Shown: positions 15,370-25,596 of the stretch, piece by piece
How positions within the stretch are numbered: the stretch's first letter is position 1
Layout of the letters: every line of letters begins with the position of its first letter
NCBI GenBank assembly: GCA_965240325.2
Contig: OZ251229.1
Location: 620,001 to 684,000 of the forward strand
Direction of reading: 5' to 3'
DNA from: Rebecca billardiae RCC1528
Taxonomy: Eukaryota; Protista; Haptophyta
DNA: 64,000 nucleotides
Translations under genes and position numbers: made by a program
Notes under the pieces: model-generated
Database searches by the model: none
What the model was told of the DNA's origin: nothing
The model's input: only the letters and a program-made list of their open reading frames with translations

Positions 15370-17034
15370 TCAGCCGTCGCCAGCCTCGGCCTCATCAGGA
15401 GCGCCGTCGGAGCGGTGGTCTCCGGCTCGGCTCGGCTTGGTCAGCACGTCACCGGCATCGCCACCGTCGGCGTGGTGCTCGTCAGCGGCGGCGGCGGCGG
15501 CGAGTGTAGCCTGCAGGCACGCATGAACAACGTGCGTCTGCCAGCGACGAAGGGCCAGCCGATCCGCACTCGAGCCGACCTCTGTGCCCGCTGGCGCGGG
15601 GACGGGCGGGACGTCGACCAGCGCTGGTGCTGCCGCGCCCGCCCGCGTGGCGCACTCCCGAGCGCGCGCGCGCGCGCAGACATGGGAGGAGAGCATCGGG
15701 ATCTGGTGCTGCTCCAGCGCGCTGACGAGTGCATCGGGAAGCGCCGCCTCGCGCTCGGCCGCCCGCTCGGCCGCCACCTCCGCCTCCGCGTCGGCAGGCG
15801 GCGCGTCGACGGCGAGCAGCGCGGCGCGCGCCTCGCGCAGCGCGCGGCCGAGCGCGCCCAACCGCTCATGCCACGCGTACAGAGCGCGCACGCCCTTCGC
15901 ACCGAGGGCGCCGAGCTCGGAGACGGCGGGGCGCGCGGCGAGCCAGCCGAGGAGCAGCGCCGCGGGCACGAGGGCGACCAGCCGCGGCGGCTCGGCGCCG
16001 CCGGCCGCGGCTTGTGCTGGCTGCGCGGCCGCGCGCCCTCCGCCGTCGCCGGCCGCGCCGGCGTCGCCGGCGTCGCCGGCCGCGGCCGCGCGCACCGCGC
16101 GCAGCACCTCCGGCCTGAAGGCGTCGAGGCAGTCCTCGAGCACGCGCGCGAAGGGCGGGAACTGCGCGCGCAGCTCGGGCCACAGCGCGGGCGCGACGTG
16201 CGGGCTGAGGAAGTTGTGCGTGATCGCCACGCTCCACTCGAGGTTGAGCACCGCGTGCCACCAGCCCTGCGGCACCAGCAGCGTCTGCCCTGGCCGCTGC
16301 ACGAGCTCGAGCACGCGCGCCTCGCCCGCCTGGGCCGCGGCGCAGAGGGCGGGGTACGCGTCGGCGAACCACGCGCACGGCATCGTCGCGCGCGGCTCAT
16401 CGCACCCGTCCTGCATGCCCAGCAGCGCGCGCGGCGTGCCCGGCGGCAGCAGCACCCATCGCTTGGCGCCGCACGCGCACGAGTTCCACGCCGCCGTGAG
16501 CAGCGGGTCCACGTGGAGGCACGTGCCGGTGCGCGCGCCGCCGGCGACCCAGTACCGCATCGACGAGCCCGGCACGAGCGCGAGCAGGTCATCGGCGAAC
16601 AGCTCTGGCGGCGCGTAGTCCGCCAGCAGCGCGGCGCGCTCGCCCTTGAAGCGGCGCTCGAAGCAGTAGTACGGGAAGTCTCCGGAATTGTCCGATGCGT
16701 ACTGCACGTACTCGCGCAGCGAGAGGGAGACGTCGCCGGCGAGATCGACGGTCATGTCGCCGTAGCTCGCCACGAGCGCCTCGGCTGACGACCACTTGGT
16801 CGACGCCGGCCAACCGTCCGCGCAGCCTTCGACCACCGCCGGCTCGTTGTCGCGCAGCAGCTCGGCGGCGGTCGTGTCGGCGCTCGAGACGACGCGGACG
16901 CGGCGCGCGGCGGGTGGCTCCTCGTAGAAGCGCTGCAGCCACTCGCTCCGCTCCGCAAAGCCGCGGCGCCGCGAGTTGTGCAGCACACTCGCGCCGAGCG
17001 GCGTCTGCGCGGGCGCGCTCGTCGTCGCCGGCAT
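15370..17034 (-). CDS. JmjC-domain 2OG/Fe(II) oxygenase (JMJD6-like)
   Basis: YAPPELFADDL, RYWVAGGARTGTCLHVDPLLTAAWN..GAKRWVLLPP, QRPGQTLLVPQGWWHAVLNL..SVAITHNF. HxD...H metal triad intact. A 3' intron is possible. Confidence 0.88.
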   Translation of the reverse strand: MPATTSAPAQTPLGASVLHNSRRRGFAERSEWLQRFYEEPPAARRVRVVSSADTTAAELLRDNEPAVVEGCADGWPASTKWSSAEALVASYGDMTVDLAGDVSLSLREYVQYASDNSGDFPYYCFERRFKGERAALLADYAPPELFADDLLALVPGSSMRYWVAGGARTGTCLHVDPLLTAAWNSCACGAKRWVLLPPGTPRALLGMQDGCDEPRATMPCAWFADAYPALCAAAQAGEARVLELVQRPGQTLLVPQGWWHAVLNLEWSVAITHNFLSPHVAPALWPELRAQFPPFARVLEDCLDAFRPEVLRAVRAAAAGDAGDAGAAGDGGGRAAAQPAQAAAGGAEPPRLVALVPAALLLGWLAARPAVSELGALGAKGVRALYAWHERLGALGRALREARAALLAVDAPPADAEAEVAAERAAEREAALPDALVSALEQHQIPMLSSHVCARARARECATRAGAAAPALVDVPPVPAPAGTEVGSSADRLALRRWQTHVVHACLQATLAAAAAADEHHADGGDAGDVLTKPSRAGDHRSDGAPDEAEAGDG

Positions 17035-17172: not shown

Positions 17173-18931
17173 ATGGTGCCGACACCAGGCGCAGGCGGGG
17201 GCGGGGTGCGCCTCCTCGGCGCCGATGTGGAGCGCTCGGACGCAGCTAGGCGTGAGTCTGCGGGTGCGCGCGAGCCCCTGCGCGCGCTGCCGCGCGCGCC
17301 GCGCGCCCGCGCCCGCGCACGTGCCCTCACGGCGCGCGCGCGCCACACGCTCGCGCTCCAGGCCACGCCGGCGTGCCGCGGCGCTCCCCGTGGGCACGTG
17401 GCCTGACGGTGTGGAGCGCGTCGTTTCCGCTCCTCGCGTACCTCCTCTGGCTCGGCCTCACCGCCTCGCTCCTCCTCGCCTACCTCGGCGTGCGCGAGCG
17501 CGCGGGCCGGTGCGCGGCCGACTGGTACGGGTACGGCGACGGCTCCGGCTGCTTCGAGCAGACGATCCGCGTGCCGTGGATGCGGATGAGCGGGAAGACG
17601 TACTCCGAGTTCAACGCCTTCTTCGCGGACCAGGACGTCCTCCACTACGACGTGCTCGTCCTCCCCGCGCGCGCCGACTTCTTCGACGAGCGCGCGCTGC
17701 GCGAGGCGGCTGAGCTCGATCTCTTCCTGCGGAACGGCGAGCTCGGTCCGAACGCGTCGTACGCGCTGCTGTGCCACCGGCCGCCGATCCGCGGCACGCT
17801 CGCGCCGTGCCCGCCGTCCTCCATCTTTGGCCTCGCCGGCGTGCTCCCCGCGCGCAGCGCGCTCGTGACCGCGTACGGCTGGTCTCAGTTTGTGGGCTGC
17901 AGCACGTGGGCGGGGACGGCCGACAGCGCGACCGCGCCCGAGGCTTCGGAGGCGCACGAGGACGAGGACGCGCCGGCGTACGAGGTGGACGACGAGGACG
18001 ACTCGCACGCCTCGTCCGTCGGCATGCTCCGCCTCACCTACCGCCTCACCCGCCCGGCGGACGACGCGCCCCGCCCCGCGCCGCAGGACGTGTGGATGGC
18101 CTCGGCCGTGCGCATCGCGGAGCACTTCTCCGCCGGGCGCGGCTGTCCGTCGTGTGCGATCCGCACGACGCGGCTGACGGGGTGGATGGTGCACGAGCAC
18201 GACGCGGTCGAGCCGCTCGCCGAGCTGCTGCGCCTCGCGCCGCGCGCGCTCGCGCTCGCGCTCGGCACCGCGCTGCTCGGCTGCTGGCTGTGCGCCGGCC
18301 GCGCCGTTCGGCTGCGGCACGCGGCGTGGGCGCTGTGCGCGCGCTGCGTGGTCGCCGCCACCGCCTCGCTCGCGGCGCTCACGTTCACGCTGGCGATGCT
18401 CGCGTCGGAGGTGAAGGAGCGGCTGCCGATGGAGAGCAAGCAGCTCACCTCCCTGTGGCCCCTCGCCGCGCTCCTCTGCCTGCCGCCCAGGCTGGGCGAG
18501 CTGCCCGCCCAGCTGCGAGCGCTCGCCGACGCCGTCGCCGAGCTCGAGCACGCGCCCGCCGAGCCGCGCGCCGACTCGCGCGCCGACTCGCGCGCCGAGC
18601 GGCGCGCGGCGGCGCGCGCGCTCGGCGACGCGGCGGCGGAGGCGGTGCGGTGCGCGCTGCGCTCGGCGGGCATGCCGCCGCGCGCCAGCCTCTCCGTCCT
18701 CGACCTTCCGCCCGCGGCGTTTGCCCACCTCGCGGCGCCGCTGGTCGCGCTCGCGATGGCGGCGTTTGGCCCGTCTGCGCTGCACCTCTTCTGCGCGCTG
18801 GCGGGGGTGTGCTGCGTGGCGGACTCGGCGCTCGCCTCGGCGTTCATGCCGGCCGCGCTCGCGCTCGTGGGCCGCGCGCAGCTGCGAGAGCGGCAGAGGA
18901 CGGCGGCGGGCGCCGAGCCGGCGCGCGCGCT

Positions 18932-18973
<42 letters not shown>

Positions 18974-21900
18974 GCCGGGCGCGCGCCGAGCCTCAGCGGT
19001 GGCGGCGGAGGAGGAGGAGGAGGAGGGCGCAAGCCTGCCGCGCGCGGGCAGCCGGGCGCGCGCGGGCGGCGAGGGCGACGCGCAGCGCTGCGCGCCGCTC
19101 ACGCACGTGGTCGTCGCCGCGGGCGGCGCGGCCGTGGCGCCCGCGGCGGCGCGGCCGGCGGATGCGGCGATCGGGTCGGCGGCCGCGGCGGCCGCGCAGC
19201 CGCCTGGGCACTCAGAGCCTGCCGCGCACGCGGGCGCGGCCGAGGCGAGCGTGGGGTGCGTGGGGTGCGTGGGGTGCGTGGGGTGCGAGGAGCAGCCGGC
19301 GCCAGCGCACGCGGCGGCGCGCGGCGTGCCGGCCGCGACGGGCGGCGCAGCGTGGATGCACGCCGAGCGCCCGCCGGCGGATGCGTCGCCGGGCACGCGG
19401 CGCGCCGCGCTCGCACCGCCGGCGGCAGTCTCGGCGTCGGCCGCGCCCGCCGCGGCCGGCGGCTCGGCGCGCGCGGCCGAGCCGCGCGCGCCGCCGCCCT
19501 CGCCGCCGCGGCCGACGCCGCCGCCGCCCGCGCACGGCCGCGCGGCGTGCGCCGCGCCGCACGAGCCCGACGGCGCGCCCCTGCTCGGGGTGCTCGCGGT
19601 CTTCTCGCCGACCTTCAGCGCACTCGGCGCCGAGGGCGAGGCCGGCGCGGCCGCGGCGCCCGCCGAGCGGCGCGGCGGGTCGGCGCTGCGCCCGCTCGCG
19701 GCCGCGGCGCGCGCGGCGCTCGGCGCGGCGCGCGCGCCGAGCCCCGGTCCGGCGCCGCGCGCGGCCGGGCGCTTCCCGGAGAGCGCGTGGGCGTACGCGC
19801 TCCTGCACTACCGCGCGCTCGCCCTCGCCCTCGCGCTGCTCGGCCTGACGCACGCGGCGCACGCGCTGCGCTTCCCGTCGCCGGGCGCTGTGCAAACGCC
19901 GCGCGCGCTCGTGCCGCCGCCGGTGTGCGCGCTCTCGAACGGCAGCCTGCAGCTCAAGTACGGCGCTGCCGGCGGCGGCGGCGGCGGCGGCGGCGGAGCC
20001 AACGGCGGCGGCGGCGCCAACTGCTGGGACGTCGACTCGTTCGTCGCGCTCGAGGAGCTGTGCTTCAGCCGTCTCACACACGTGCACCTGCTGCTGAGCG
20101 GAGTGCCGCCGCTCGGCACGCCCGCCGAGCGCGCGCTCACGCGCCGCTTCTGCGACGAGCTCGAGCGCACGCGCGAGCTGGCGCACGCGCGCGTGCTCTC
20201 GGTGAAGTGCTGGCTGCGCGCGTTCGACCGCGAGCTCGGCCCCGGCTTCTCGCGCTCGCAGCTCGAGGCGGAGCTCGCGCTGCAGCGCTGGCTCACCTCA
20301 CCCGCAGGTGAGTATTTTGCGGACGACGTCGCGTGGCGCGCCGGCCACGTGTCGTCGTCGCGCATCCGGATGGAGCTCGACCTGCGCGCGCCGCGGCCGC
20401 GTGGCGAGGCGAGCGCGGCGCTGCGGCACGAGCGCACCGAGCAGGAGTGGGTGGAGGCGCGCGCGACGCTGCTGGAGGAGGTGCGCGCGCGCGCGTCTGA
20501 GCTGAGCCGCGCGATGCGCGCCCACTCGGACGCGGCCGCCGCGTCCCAGCCGGGCGCGCCCGCCGCCGCCGCCGCCGCCGCGGCCGCCGCCGCTGCCGTG
20601 GGCGGCCCCGCCTCGGCGGCCGCGTCGGGCGCCGCCGTGTCCATCACCGTCGTCGCGCCCGACCTCGAGTCCGCCGCCGAGGCGCTGCTCGTCGAGGGCA
20701 ACGCGATGCGCCGCGCCGTCCTGGTCGCGCTGGCAGTCGCGGCGCCGTGTCTGCTCGCCGCGTGCGACGCGCGCCGCACCGTGTGGTCGCGCACGCTCGC
20801 GCAGGGCACGGGCGCGCTGGTGGTGGGCACGGCGGCGGGGCAGGTGTGCGCGGCCGCGTGGGCGCGCGGCGCGCTGCTGCACGCGCCCTCGACGCAGCGC
20901 GGCTGGCTCTCGCTGCTGCTCGCGCTCGGCGTGCTGCCGATCGCGCAGCCGCCACTCGCGGCCGTGTGTGCGTACGCGCGCGCGCGCGGGCCGAGCGCGC
21001 CGCGGCGCGCGATCGCCGCCGCGCGCGCGAGCGGCGCGCAAGCCATGGTGGGCGCGGCGGTGACGGCCGCGGCGGCGCTGCCGCTCAACGCGGCGAGCGT
21101 GCCCTCGCTCCGCCAGTTCGGCGCGCTCGTCGCATTCCAAGCGGCGCTCGGTCTGCTGTGCGCAGGGCTGGTGATCGCGCTGCTGGCGCTCGAGCCGCCC
21201 GCGCCGCCCGCGCGCTGCGCGCCGCGCGCCGAGCGGCGGCACGGCCGGCGCGCCGCCGCGCGGCGCGAGGCGTGCGCGGCGCGCATCGGCGCCGCGGCGC
21301 GCGGCTGGCTCGCGCGCGCCGCCTGGCTGCGCGCGCGCGAGTCGACCGCGCAGTACATGCGCGCGGTGCGCGCGGCGGTGCGCGCCGCCGAGGCCGCGCC
21401 GCGCGGCGCGGAGCGGGCGGCGCCTCCGGCCTCGGCGCACGCGCTGCTGCGCTGGGTGTGCGCCGCCGGGCACGACGAGCCGGCGCCGCGTGCGCCGCCG
21501 GCGCCGCGTGCGCCGCCGGCGCACGCGGCCGCGCGGCCGGACGACGACGGCGCGCGCGCGCTGCCGCCGCGCAGCGCGCGGCCGTACACCGCGCCGCCGC
21601 CCCCGGAGCTCGAGCTCGCGCTCACGCACACGCACCCCGCGACAGGCGCGCGCGCGCTGCGGCTGGCGGTGCTGGCGCTGGGCGGCGTGGCGGCGGCGGG
21701 GACGTGCGCCGAGGCGGCCGCCATCCTCCGCCTCGCGGCGCGCGGCGGCGGCGCGGCCCGCGCGCGCGAGCTTGGCACTGCGCTCGGCGTGAGTATCGTC
21801 TCGGCTCTGCTCGAGTGCGCGTGCGTGGTCTGGAGCTGTGCGCTGTGTGCGCCCGTGCAGCGCTGCACGCCGCTGCTGAGCGCGCTCGCGCCGCCGCCGC

Positions 21901-23840
21901 GCGCGCTCGCGCACCCCGGCCCGTCGGCGGGCGGCGCGCCCGCCGCCGCGCCGCCGGCCGCTGGCGGCTTTTTGCGCAAGCGCGACTGGCCAGCGGTGGC
22001 GGTGGTGGTGCCCGCGGGCGCGGAGCCCGCGGAGGCGGTGGGGCGCACGCTGGCCGCGTGCTTTGCGCTGTGCTACCCGCCTGCCCGGCTGCACGTCTTC
22101 CTGCTCGACGGCGCGCCCACGGCCGAGGCGAGCCGGCAGCGTGCGCTCGGCGCGCAGCGCGCGTACGCGCGTCGATTTGGCGTCGGCGCGGCGGCGGCGG
22201 CGGGTGGCGGCGGCGACGAAGGCGGCGCCGCCGCGTCGGGCGCGGCCTCGTCCGCGCACGCGCCGCCTCCGCCGCGCTGGCTGCCGCGCGCCAAGCGCTG
22301 CGGCTTCACGATCGTCCCGTGCGCGCAGCCGGAGGGCGGCGGCGGCCTCGCCACCAGCCCCGCGGACGACGTGCGCCGCTGGCTGGGCGGCGGCGGCGCG
22401 GCCGGCGGCGCCGCCGGCGCCCTTCGCAAGGAGCGGCTGCTGCTGCTCGTCGAGCCCGGCGCGGCGCCCGAGCCGGCGGCGCTGCAGCTGCTGCTGCCGG
22501 CCGCGCTGCGCGTGCGCGTGCCCGCGCGCCGCGCGCCCGCGCCCGCGCCGCCGCGCGCGCTCGCGGACCGCAGCGTGGGCTCGGTCCGCGCGCGCGCCGT
22601 GCCGCAAGCGCGGCAGCAGCTGCACGCGGGCCGCGCGCGCGCCGCCGCCATGTCCGACGCTTGCGACGGCGCCCTGCTCGACTGCCTGCTGCGCTCGCTC
22701 GACGGCGGCCGCGCCGAGCGCGCGCGGCTGGCCGGCGGCGCCGAGCCGGCCGGCGGGGGCGGCGGGTGCGGGTGCGGCGGCGCGAAGCTCCCGGCCGCGC
22801 CCGCCGCCGCCGCGGCCGCGCCGCCGCGCGCGCCGCCCGCCGCCGCCGCGCTGCCCGCCGCCGCCGCGCTGCCCCTGCGCTCCACGCCGTGCGTCACCCT
22901 GTACGCGCGCGACGCGCTCGTCGGCGCGGGCGGCGTGCCCTCGGGCGCGGCCAGCCTCGCGCTCGGGCTGGGCTGGGCGCTGCAGGAGGCGGGCTACCAC
23001 CAGCTGTACTGCGCCGGCGCGCGCGCGCGCTCCGCGCAGCCGCCGGGCGGCGGCTCGGCCGTGCGCGCGCGCGCCACGCAGGACTCGGCGCTGCTCGTGC
23101 AGGGGTGGCGCAGCAGCGGCGGCGGCGGCGCCGAGCGCGCGGCCGCGCGGGAGTGCGCGCCCGCGCCCGCGCCCGCGCACCCCGCCGCGCGCGCGCTGCT
23201 CGCCGGCCGCGCGCAGACGCTCGCCGGCGCGCTGCTGCTGCTGCTGTGTCTGCTGCTCATCGCGAGCGCGGCCGGCGAGCCATCCCTCCCGCGTGAGGTG
23301 TTGCTCCCGCTGGGCGCGCACAAGGCTGCCTTCGTCGGCCTGCAGCTGCTCGTCCTCGCGCGCGCGCGCGCGATCGGCGGCGCCGAGGGCGGCCGAGCGC
23401 CGCGCGCGCCCGCGAGCGCGGCGTGGCGCGACGCGCACGCCGCGGCGACACTAGCGGCCTGCAGCACCCTCGCCCTCGCCGCGCGCGCGCTCGCGCGCGA
23501 CAGGCGGCGCGCGCGCGCCGCGTGGCCGCTCGTCCCGCTCGGCAGCCTCGCCACCCTCTTCGCGGTCGCGCTCGGCGTGCTCGCGTGGCGCTGGGCGCGC
23601 GCGCTCTGGCCGCCGCAGCCGGCGGGCGCCGAGGGCGAGGCGGACACGCTCGCCGAGCTCCGCGTCGCGGGTGCGCTGCTGCTGCTGCCGCTGCTGCTGT
23701 GCTGGCCGGCGGTGCGCGCGCTGGCGGACGAGCTGAGCAGCGAGCTGCTCGGGGAGAGCGCGCACGCCGAGGCCACGGCGCTCGAGCGCGCGCGCTCGGA
23801 GCGCACGCTGGTCGCGCTGTCTCAGGGTGGGCGCCCCTGA
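17173..23840 (+). CDS. Large polytopic membrane protein: Patched/NPC1-like (SSD/RND) module plus degenerate cellulose-synthase-like GT2 module
   Basis: Probable ATG at 17173 with intron 17252-17361, joined in frame to the 2155-aa ORF. SSD-like HLFCALAGVCCVADSALASAFMPAAL, luminal VKCWLRAF..YFADDVAW..SSRI and a second TM bundle (SVPSLRQFGALVAFQAALGLL). GT2-like DWPAVAVVVPAGAEPAEAVGRTLAACFALCYPPARLHVFLLDG and LYARDALVGAGGVP..LQEAGY. Confidence 0.65.
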
Positions 23841-24249
23841 GCGGCGCAGCGGAGGCCTGAGGACAAGCGCGGAACCCGGCCCGCGCCTGCGCAGCAACTA
23901 GCAAGCACGGGCGCAGCGAAGCATACGAGACGATACGGTCACATGCATTCGTGACGTCGTCTTCTCGTCAGACGATGACGACGTATGTTCGTCCGACATG
24001 CCGATCCGTTTATTAGCGACAGAGGGTTGCCGACTGGATGATGACGATGTACATACATGCGTCTCACAAGTCACTACGGTCCGTGCTCGACGTTACTACT
24101 ACTAGCTACAATTATTGACTATAAAGTAGCTAGCTAGTAGTACTTTTAGTCAGTCACAGGCTGTGCATCCCGCCAACCAGCTGGCCAGCATACTGAATAG
24201 GAATACTCATCATCGATTCTCATTTCTCAACGCTTGGGGGCCAGACACG

Positions 24250-25596
24250 ATGGCCGGCGAAGACGCCGCGCCCGAGGCGGAGGAGGGCTCCCCTGCCGCG
24301 CGGCCGGCGCGGCGGAGCAGCCGGCGGTCCTCCCCCCGCGCGCTCCCGCCGTCCCCGCCCCCGCCCGCTCACCTGCTCGTCCTCGACCTCAACGGGCTGC
24401 TCGTCGAGCGGCTGCGCTCGCGCAAGGAGGGCGGTCAGCCGAAGCGGCCGCCCGACCTGCGCGAGGGCGGCTGCGAGGTCTTCTTCCGCGCGCACATGCG
24501 CGAGTTCGTGCGCTGGTGCTTCGAGCACTTCGTCGTCGGCGTGTGGACCAGCGCCAAGGCGAAGAACGTCCGCGGCCTCCTGCGCGCCGTCTTTGGCGCC
24601 GAGGCGGCGCGCGTCGCGTTTGTGTGGGACCAGGCGCGCTGCACGACCGCCGCGCAGCTGCGCCACCCGGAGAACCGCGCGAAGCCCATCTTCCTCAAGG
24701 AGCTGGAGGTGCTCTGGGCCTCGGGCGCCGCCGGCCCGCCCGGCCTCTACGCCGCGCACAACTCCGTCCTCCTCGACGACTCGATCTACAAGAGCGCGCT
24801 CAACCCCGCGCACACGGCCGTGCACCCGGCTGAGTGGCGCACGTGCCGCGCGGGCGCGAGGGGCGAGGACGCGGCGGACGACGGGCTCGCGCCGGGCGGG
24901 GCGCTGCGCACGCTGCTCGGGCTGCTCGCGCGCGCGCCCGACGTGCGCGTGCCCCTCGAGCACGCCGCCGCCGCCGGCACCTACCCCGGCCTCGTGCCAT
25001 CCGCCGCCGAGCGCGCGGTCGCCCTAGCAGCCATCCCTGGGCTGGGCGCGTACTGCGCCGCGCGCGTGGCGAGGGCGGCGAGGGGCGCGCGTGCCGGTGT
25101 GCGCGGCGCCGGGGTGGACGGCGGGACGGACGAGGCGGAGGGCGAGCCGGACCGCGCCGCTCGCGCCGACGCGTCGCCTCGCGCGCCGCAGCGCACCCCG
25201 AACGCGCGCGCCCACGGCGGCCAGACGGCGCGCGCGCACGGCGCGCGGCACGCGCCGCCGGAGCCGGAGCCGCAGCAGCAGGAGCAGGGCGGGCGCAAGC
25301 CGGGGCGCAGGAAGCCGCGGAGGCAGGCGCAGCCCGCGCTCGACGCGGCCGAGGGCTCGCCGCGCGAGCCCGCCCACGCGCGAGCGCGCGACGGCGCGCG
25401 GCAGCGGCAGCAGCGCGCGTCGCCTCGCGACCATCGCCACCGCCGCGCCGGGCCCGGAGCAGCGGCCGGCGCGGCGGCGGCGCGCGCAACAGCGGCCCGG
25501 GGCGGCGAAGACGACCTCCGGGGCAGCGGTGCTTTCGACGCGCGCGACGACCCCGTCCTCGCCGCCCTGTGCGCGACGGGGTGGCGGGAGCTGTGA
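24250..25596 (+). CDS. FCP1/NIF-family HAD phosphatase-like protein
   Basis: LLVLDLNGLLV, FFRAHMREFVRWCFEHFVVGVWTSA, FVWDQARC, KPIFLKEL, NSVLLDDSIYKSALNP. Confidence 0.8.
   Translation: MAGEDAAPEAEEGSPAARPARRSSRRSSPRALPPSPPPPAHLLVLDLNGLLVERLRSRKEGGQPKRPPDLREGGCEVFFRAHMREFVRWCFEHFVVGVWTSAKAKNVRGLLRAVFGAEAARVAFVWDQARCTTAAQLRHPENRAKPIFLKELEVLWASGAAGPPGLYAAHNSVLLDDSIYKSALNPAHTAVHPAEWRTCRAGARGEDAADDGLAPGGALRTLLGLLARAPDVRVPLEHAAAAGTYPGLVPSAAERAVALAAIPGLGAYCAARVARAARGARAGVRGAGVDGGTDEAEGEPDRAARADASPRAPQRTPNARAHGGQTARAHGARHAPPEPEPQQQEQGGRKPGRRKPRRQAQPALDAAEGSPREPAHARARDGARQRQQRASPRDHRHRRAGPGAAAGAAAARATAARGGEDDLRGSGAFDARDDPVLAALCATGWREL

Follow-up and report, generated by a model that had tools for sequence, protein, structure and literature searches.

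A degenerate paralogue of a Patched-type RND/BcsA-like glycosyltransferase fusion in Rebecca billardiae RCC1528, probably kept as a non-catalytic membrane protein

A 64,000-nt stretch of contig OZ251229.1 of the haptophyte Rebecca billardiae RCC1528 (the window; coordinates are window positions unless another contig is named) contains on its forward strand, at 17373..23840, one open reading frame (ORF) of 2,155 codons. Comparison with relatives suggests that this window gene is a degenerate paralogue of a fusion between a Patched/NPC1-type RND module and a BcsA-like glycosyltransferase of the GT2 family, and that its product is probably kept as a non-catalytic membrane protein, a pseudoenzyme. 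The initial annotation of the window knew of no described protein with this architecture. The architecture is not particular to the gene: an intact version of the fusion is present on contig C23 of the same genome as well as in full-length relatives, and the window gene appears as its degenerate copy. Both domain families are well known and it is their combination that is new. The full-text literature search found no paper on a Patched/NPC1-type module fused to a BcsA-like synthase.

The uninterrupted frame of about 2150 amino acids described initially was borne out. Measured from stop to stop the frame has 2,194 codons, its GC content at third codon positions (GC3) is 0.93-1.00 in all 300-nt blocks, and its phase is constant from ~17380 to 23840, with no frameshift over 6.4 kb. 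From the position-specific composition 16.3 stops were expected in this frame whereas none was seen (P about 8e-8), and none of 2,000 column shuffles of the ORF was stop-free. The absence of stops over 2,155 codons, the steady GC3 and phase, and the stop deficit show that this is a maintained coding frame.

The genome (72 Mb, 41 contigs) was scanned with the Pfam models Patched and Glyco_trans_2_3. The model of the Patched sterol-sensing domain (SSD; PF02460) gave 33 matches at about 30 loci and Glyco_trans_2_3 gave 7 matches. On contig C23, a Patched and a GT2 match were found 3.4 kb apart on the same strand. Pfam analysis and reading of the sequence assigned them to one gene encoding an intact Patched-SSD/IQ/BcsA-like GT2 fusion (contig C23, about 1590037-1596800, minus strand), whose intron/exon boundaries were checked against transcript-derived proteins. 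A single C23 frame of 1,598 codons contains the Sterol-sensing/Patched SSD (E 1e-16), the second transmembrane (TM) bundle and an IQ motif (Pfam E 0.003), and it also begins the GT2 domain (PCYKEPDD, LLDD). The downstream exons, which follow after short introns, supply KAGNMNHW, DCD, TED and QRCRW. A word search with the C23 copy revealed two full-length relatives: P0003 (1,869 aa, an uninterrupted ORF on a Logan contig) and P0004 (1,817 aa, an MMETSP transcript labelled complete). In both of them, Sterol-sensing, Patched SSD and Glyco_trans_2_3 all exceed their Pfam thresholds within one protein, and the Pfam content comprises Patched/Sterol-sensing plus Glyco_trans_2_3/Cellulose_synt. Among Protein Data Bank (PDB) entries, the GT2 part of P0004 matched BcsA most closely (E 3e-25), with plant CesA at 1.6e-5, and its N-terminal part matched NPC1 (2e-17) most closely, followed by NPC1L1 and PTCH1 (about 1e-12), with matches in both halves of this part. 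The GT2 motifs of the intact family align residue for residue with those of BcsA. Since C23, P0003 and P0004 each carry the fusion in one protein, the comparison indicates that the SSD-RND/IQ/BcsA-like GT2 fusion is a real and conserved protein family.

Several side observations were made on this family. The first intron in the GT2 part of the C23 gene has an in-frame stop, so that the two halves resemble two ORFs in the same frame. P0005 (1,863 aa), which falls in the 90% cluster of P0004, agrees with it as far as about residue 1,700, after which its C-terminus is unrelated; a frameshift or an alternative assembly of a transcript of the intact fusion could account for it. The roughly 30 Patched SSD loci of the genome, many of them with open frames that are very long and reach 2,383 codons, amount to a large SSD/RND expansion. 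The large-ORF Patched loci on contigs C10 and C13 were considered as further fusions and rejected, as they are plain SSD/NPC1-like genes.

The window copy shares the module order of C23, P0003 and P0004 from TM1 to the C-terminal helices, in a single frame in each case, and segments of the ecto-loops, TM6, the linker and the GT domain are collinear. The C23 fusion is the nearest relative of the window GT2 part anywhere in the genome. In contrast to the three intact proteins, which keep GLDD, VDY, IQ, PC(Y/F)KEP, LLDD, KAGNMNHW, DCD, TED and QRxRW and pass the Pfam thresholds, the window copy does not pass and has no such motif in intact form. It is also about 300 aa longer than the intact relatives because of low-complexity inserts, and it consists of a single large exon whereas the C23 gene has several introns in the GT2 part.

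The homology of the C-terminal third of the window protein to the BcsA-like GT2 module is well supported by profile comparison. The hhalign alignment of window aa 1530-2134 with P0004 1300-1814 has a probability of 97% (E 5.9e-11, 474 columns), and the HMMER family profile matched aa 1514-1605 (independent E-value, iE, 2e-18) and aa 2042-2135 (iE 8e-5). When P0004 was searched against the whole genome, the window gene was the next-best locus after C23 (E 1e-9). Two hydrophobic TM helices predicted from hydropathy (aa 1428-1496, 21654..21860) precede the GT domain and at least four follow it, in the arrangement that would make up the glucan channel; the C-terminal helices (aa 1951-2114, 23223..23714) align to the family, the second HMMER match falling in this region, and are 41-43% identical to the fragment P0002 described below. 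Between them lies a GT-A-like domain with dead motifs (21960..23117), recognised by TIGR03030, hhalign, HMMER and ESM-Atlas features and weakly by Foldseek. Profile alignment to the intact relatives reproduced all GT2 motif positions given initially (DxD, TED, QxxRW) as well as the loss of these motifs. PC(Y/F)KEP of the intact family corresponds to PAGAEP (22011-22028), LLDD to LLDG (within 22092-22118), KAGNMNHW to PADDVRRW, DCD to EPG at the DxD position (22452-22460), TED to SLA (within 22944-22964), and QRCRW to ARATQ at the QxxRW position (within 23061-23084). The catalytic signature D, DxD, TED, QxxRW is therefore missing from the window copy. The AlphaFold model of this half, built from a 6-row alignment, had a predicted local distance difference test score (pLDDT) of 43; its first elements are beta-alpha-beta, consistent with the start of a GT-A fold. 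With this pLDDT-43 model, the best Foldseek matches were BcsA structures at E 0.013-0.026, below significance, and all 50 of the 50 listed matches, likewise sub-significant, were nucleotide-sugar glycosyltransferases.

The N-terminal two-thirds show the plan of one plus five and again one plus five TM helices with two large ecto-loops; this plan, proposed initially, is visible in hydropathy and in collinear alignments, although TM4 and TM9 of the window copy are weakly hydrophobic. The overall hhalign alignment of the N-terminal part to the family had E 0.008 and a probability of 5%. With a relaxed threshold, window aa 2-1410 aligned globally and collinearly with P0004 69-1290 (27% identity, 1,025 columns). 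Segments of this half were then scored with hhalign against shuffled versions of themselves, and four RND or linker segments collinear with the family exceeded their shuffles (z about 6, 6, 4.8 and 3.6). In ecto-loop 1, the conserved segment aa 71-155 (17583..17837), with a Cys...Cys-P-P-S-S motif, scored 33.9 vs 17.9 +/- 2.6 and is collinear with P0004 124-204; its C, S and W columns do not vary among Patched paralogues. TM6 (aa 468-499), tested with a 7-sequence SSD profile built from the same genome, scored 26.0 vs 12.5 +/- 2.2. In ecto-loop 2, the conserved segment aa 889-989 scored 28.6 vs 17.0 +/- 2.4, collinear with P0004 633-732. The IQ-region linker (aa 1294-1334, 21252..21374) scored 21.4 vs 14.1 +/- 2.0; it is collinear with the IQ region of the family and retains an IQ-like remnant, I-G-x3-R-G-x3-R, at aa 1305-1315 in what would be a cytosolic linker, and the Pfam IQ model misses it. 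The second TM bundle (aa 1100-1300) scored about 12-13 vs about 12-16 for shuffles, which is not significant, and is collinear in the global alignment. Taken at this level, the N-terminal part very probably descends from the RND module of the fusion. The proposed Patched/NPC1-like and GT2 fusion is thus upheld for the GT2 half by hhalign and HMMER, while the RND half is supported more weakly and transitively, through the intact relatives, and has no Pfam match.

The remaining elements of the RND half follow the same order on the forward strand. TM1 (aa 11-40, 17403..17492) is seen in hydropathy and aligns with TM1 of the intact family. TM2-TM6 (aa 288-500, 18234..18872) constitute a degenerate sterol-sensing-like bundle, which Pfam does not match. 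TM7 and ecto-loop 2 occupy aa 805-1105 (19785..20687), and the second bundle, TM8-TM12 (aa 1106-1280, 20688..21212), is visible in hydropathy and matches the C23 copy in BLASTP at E 0.018. The hhalign and MAFFT alignments agree in placing RLGEL (18489-18503) of TM4 opposite GLDD of the family (G..VDN in other paralogues) and PIAQP (20937-20951) of TM10 opposite FIVDY. The conserved acidic residues of TM4 and TM10 therefore appear to be lost in the window copy, at moderate alignment confidence, a loss that had not been remarked initially. In the RND family, cation-coupled transport presumably requires these residues.

Direct searches with the window protein gave little, and the Pfam part of the profile search suggested initially was negative for both halves. 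Searching Pfam with the whole protein at E up to 10 revealed no family, the GT2 models PF13632, PF00535, PF13641 and PF03552 included, and the window locus was not among the genome matches of either PF13632 or PF02460. In NCBIfam, TIGR03030 (CelA) matched aa 1537-1593 with E 1.6e-5 at 23 bits, compared with a cut-off of 699 bits. The PDB sequence search returned low-complexity noise and an insignificant match to NCR1 (E 0.12). Word-index protein searches with the full protein and with its C-terminal 736 aa gave no matches, probably because poly-Ala and poly-Gly words swamped them. Aa 1-510 searched against the own genome matched only itself. In scans of metagenome loci the alignment of the whole family matched nothing, and that of the GT2 part matched one distant GT2. 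The ESM-Atlas features, which serve as a lead and not as a test, placed aa 1420-2155 with membrane GT2 clusters (0.96, 197 shared features) and aa 1-510 with Patched/SSD clusters (0.95, 186 shared features). An exhaustive phmmer search with aa 956-2155 found two short fragments alone, P0001 and P0002, an outcome that says little about absence because records close to this genome may be missing from the database.

P0002 is a 237-aa fragment at the start of a contig from another sample (ENA ERZ4290864). It is 41-43% identical to the window copy vs 20% to the intact form, it also has no QxxRW, it shares with the window copy two deletions relative to the intact family, and it is open over all 237 aa available. 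These features indicate an orthologue fragment of the inactive copy. From the identity, the motif loss and the two common deletions it follows that the inactive lineage is old and predates the split of the two organisms. The open P0002 frame, the missing stops and the conserved ecto-loop segments argue for continued selection on the window gene. The P0002 fragment occupies positions 1-760 of a 9-kb contig, and the stops in front of it probably belong to an intron. This contig shows no synteny with the window, its neighbours being HMG/bromodomain and HSP70 genes vs JmjC and NIF genes in the window.

The linkers of the window protein have a different character. The protein contains 26% Ala, 10% Gly and 9.5% Arg, and dozens of in-frame GC microsatellites lie inside the ORF, perfect or near-perfect ones at 18932-18972, 19249-19287, 19970-20016 and 22798-22874. 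The repeat units are (CGG)n, encoding poly-Gly, a 9-nt unit repeated 4.3 times, encoding CVG, and 18-nt units encoding Ala/Pro runs. A low-complexity linker of ~300 aa (18873..19772, forward strand) contains poly-Gly, poly-Ala and CVG repeats, whose periods are mostly multiples of 3. The microsatellites are GC-driven low-complexity inserts in the linkers, and together with the composition they point to relaxed constraint there.

Comparison with known systems places each half. In BcsA (PDB 4HG6, 4P00, 5EJ1) a GT-A domain lies between TM helices, as the GT-A-like domain does in the window gene. The intact relatives have neither a PilZ nor a c-di-GMP domain according to Pfam, the window copy differs further by missing the D,D,D,QxxRW signature, and an RND module is fused on; to our knowledge BcsA has never been found fused to such a module. 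NPC1, NPC1L1, PTCH1 and Dispatched share with the window gene the 1+5/1+5 TM plan and two large ecto-loops. The N-terminal domain of NPC1 is absent from the fusion and a C-terminal glycosyltransferase is added. The window copy differs from members of the NPC1/PTCH1 family further in that neither the Patched nor the Sterol-sensing model (PF02460, PF12349) recognises it and in that it appears to have no TM4/TM10 acidic residues.

These observations can be combined in a model in which the ancestral fusion would have begun at its N-terminus with an RND module of 12 TM helices with two ecto-loops, followed by a linker of the IQ type and two further TM helices, and would have ended in a BcsA-like GT2 domain with TM helices C-terminal to it. 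As the RND module would have both ends in the cytosol, the IQ-type linker and the two helices would keep the GT domain cytosolic as in BcsA, and the topology is coherent for a single polypeptide. The window copy would have arisen by duplication of that fusion. It retains the module order, the topology in the membrane and segments of the two ecto-loops. All its GT2 catalytic signatures are lost and, at moderate alignment confidence, so are the TM4/TM10 acidic residues, and its linkers have been filled with GC-driven low-complexity inserts. Because the residues for sugar transfer are gone and the TM4/TM10 acidic residues apparently as well, we infer that the window protein neither polymerises sugar nor runs an ion-coupled transport cycle. 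Most likely it would act as a non-catalytic partner of the intact C23 synthase or regulate it, or serve as a ligand-binding sensor through its conserved ecto-loops. A regulatory or scaffold subunit that joins polysaccharide synthesis to the handling of sterols or lipids, as suggested initially, would be plausible; a tie to scale or wall synthesis, also named there, is unsupported. A more specific version seems rather improbable, namely that the protein is an obligate non-catalytic partner, a pseudo-transporter and pseudo-synthase that would sense a sterol, lipid or other external ligand via its ecto-loops and gate or position glucan synthesis by the active subunit.

Several points weigh against a retained pseudoenzyme derived from the fusion. 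Pfam is blank up to E 10 and the Patched model misses the locus; the HMMER family profile, positive for the GT2 part, did not detect the N-terminal part at all. The AlphaFold models are poor in both halves, that of the N-terminal half (6-row alignment as well) being uninformative at pLDDT 40 next to 43 for the GT2 half, and the structural comparison considered initially, made with the GT2 model, gave the sub-significant BcsA matches. With prolines and charges in the TM4 stretch, the SSD bundle may have lost the ability to fold. Ala makes up about a quarter of the residues, which with the many microsatellite inserts fits relaxed constraint, and the sole orthologue is a fragment of 237 aa. The window copy is known from its DNA sequence, and its role as partner or sensor is a hypothesis.

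Part of this evidence would equally be expected of a decaying gene, a pseudogene in progress that lost function in both halves after the duplication, has stayed open through recent decay or GC-biased drift and makes no useful protein. The loss of all catalytic motifs and apparently of the RND acidic residues, the Ala content, the in-frame microsatellites and the missing Pfam matches all fit such decay. However, about 16 stops would be expected and none is seen, no frameshift occurs over 6.4 kb, and the ecto-loop and TM6 segments still score above their shuffles. Moreover, the 41-43% identical fragment has the same losses and is open throughout, so that the lineage has survived a long divergence. 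We consider decay unlikely on balance.

That the protein is still an active enzyme or transporter using non-canonical residues is highly improbable. D1579 is kept in LLDG and E1694 takes the place of the first DxD Asp, and both might be used; in TM4, E376 occupies position two of GLDD and might replace the Asp. However, the copy lacks TED, QxxRW and KAGN together with the second DxD Asp, and these motifs are present in P0003, P0004, the C23 exons and BcsA; we know of no GT2 of the BcsA/CesA class that works without them. Even less credible is a fusion artefact, in which two separate genes or a chance ORF in GC-rich DNA would mimic one protein. In 2-kb steps the window has a GC content of 58-83%, the gene one of about 82%, and because of this richness the six-frame listing of the window shows long ORFs in every frame. 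Over the ORF of the window gene, however, the other five frames contain 4-21 stops each, and across the proposed domain junction (21150-21750) GC3 stays at 0.96-0.98 with no intergenic dip. The same module order is moreover found in the C23 frame, in the MMETSP transcript labelled complete and in the uninterrupted ORF of the Logan contig.

The 5' end of the gene was read from the sequence. The start at 17173 given initially lies in another frame than the ORF, which is listed from 17373, and it fits a putative first exon spliced in frame. Counting from the stop at 17247, the first in-frame ATG is that of ORF residue 69, which is downstream of TM1. In the proposed model, exon 1 (17173..17251, ATG plus 26 codons and 1 base) would be followed by a 110-nt GT..AG intron (17252..17361, GTGAGT donor at 17252, AG acceptor ending at 17361) that would restore the frame, and by the main exon with the open frame (17362..23840, stop at 23838-23840), all on the forward strand. 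The predicted full product would have about 2,180 aa. The C23 paralogue has a short GC-rich intron of like style (GTGCGC...GCGCAG, roughly 90 nt). Upstream, at a distance of 139 nt from the putative exon 1, starts a divergent JmjC/Cupin_8 gene (15370-17034, minus strand), and downstream lies a NIF-type (CTD-phosphatase-like) gene (24163-25596, plus strand).

It is a long-standing open question whether cellulose-type synthesis involves sterols or sterol glucosides, and a natural fusion of an RND module with a synthase makes such a link testable. The window adds that the fusion was duplicated. In one of the copies the synthase has lost its catalytic residues and the transporter apparently its acidic ones, while the frame was kept over a long divergence. 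Loss with a retained frame is what a pseudoenzyme with a structural or regulatory function shows, and the inactive copy offers a built-in control for studying the active one. If the gene is merely decaying, it would be an example of GC pressure eroding a large membrane protein with its frame left intact, which is of modest interest. The weight of the finding falls if the window copy is unexpressed and rises if the two copies act together. If the window protein is indeed a partner of the C23 synthase, the pair would form a natural two-component link from sterol handling to cellulose-type synthesis.

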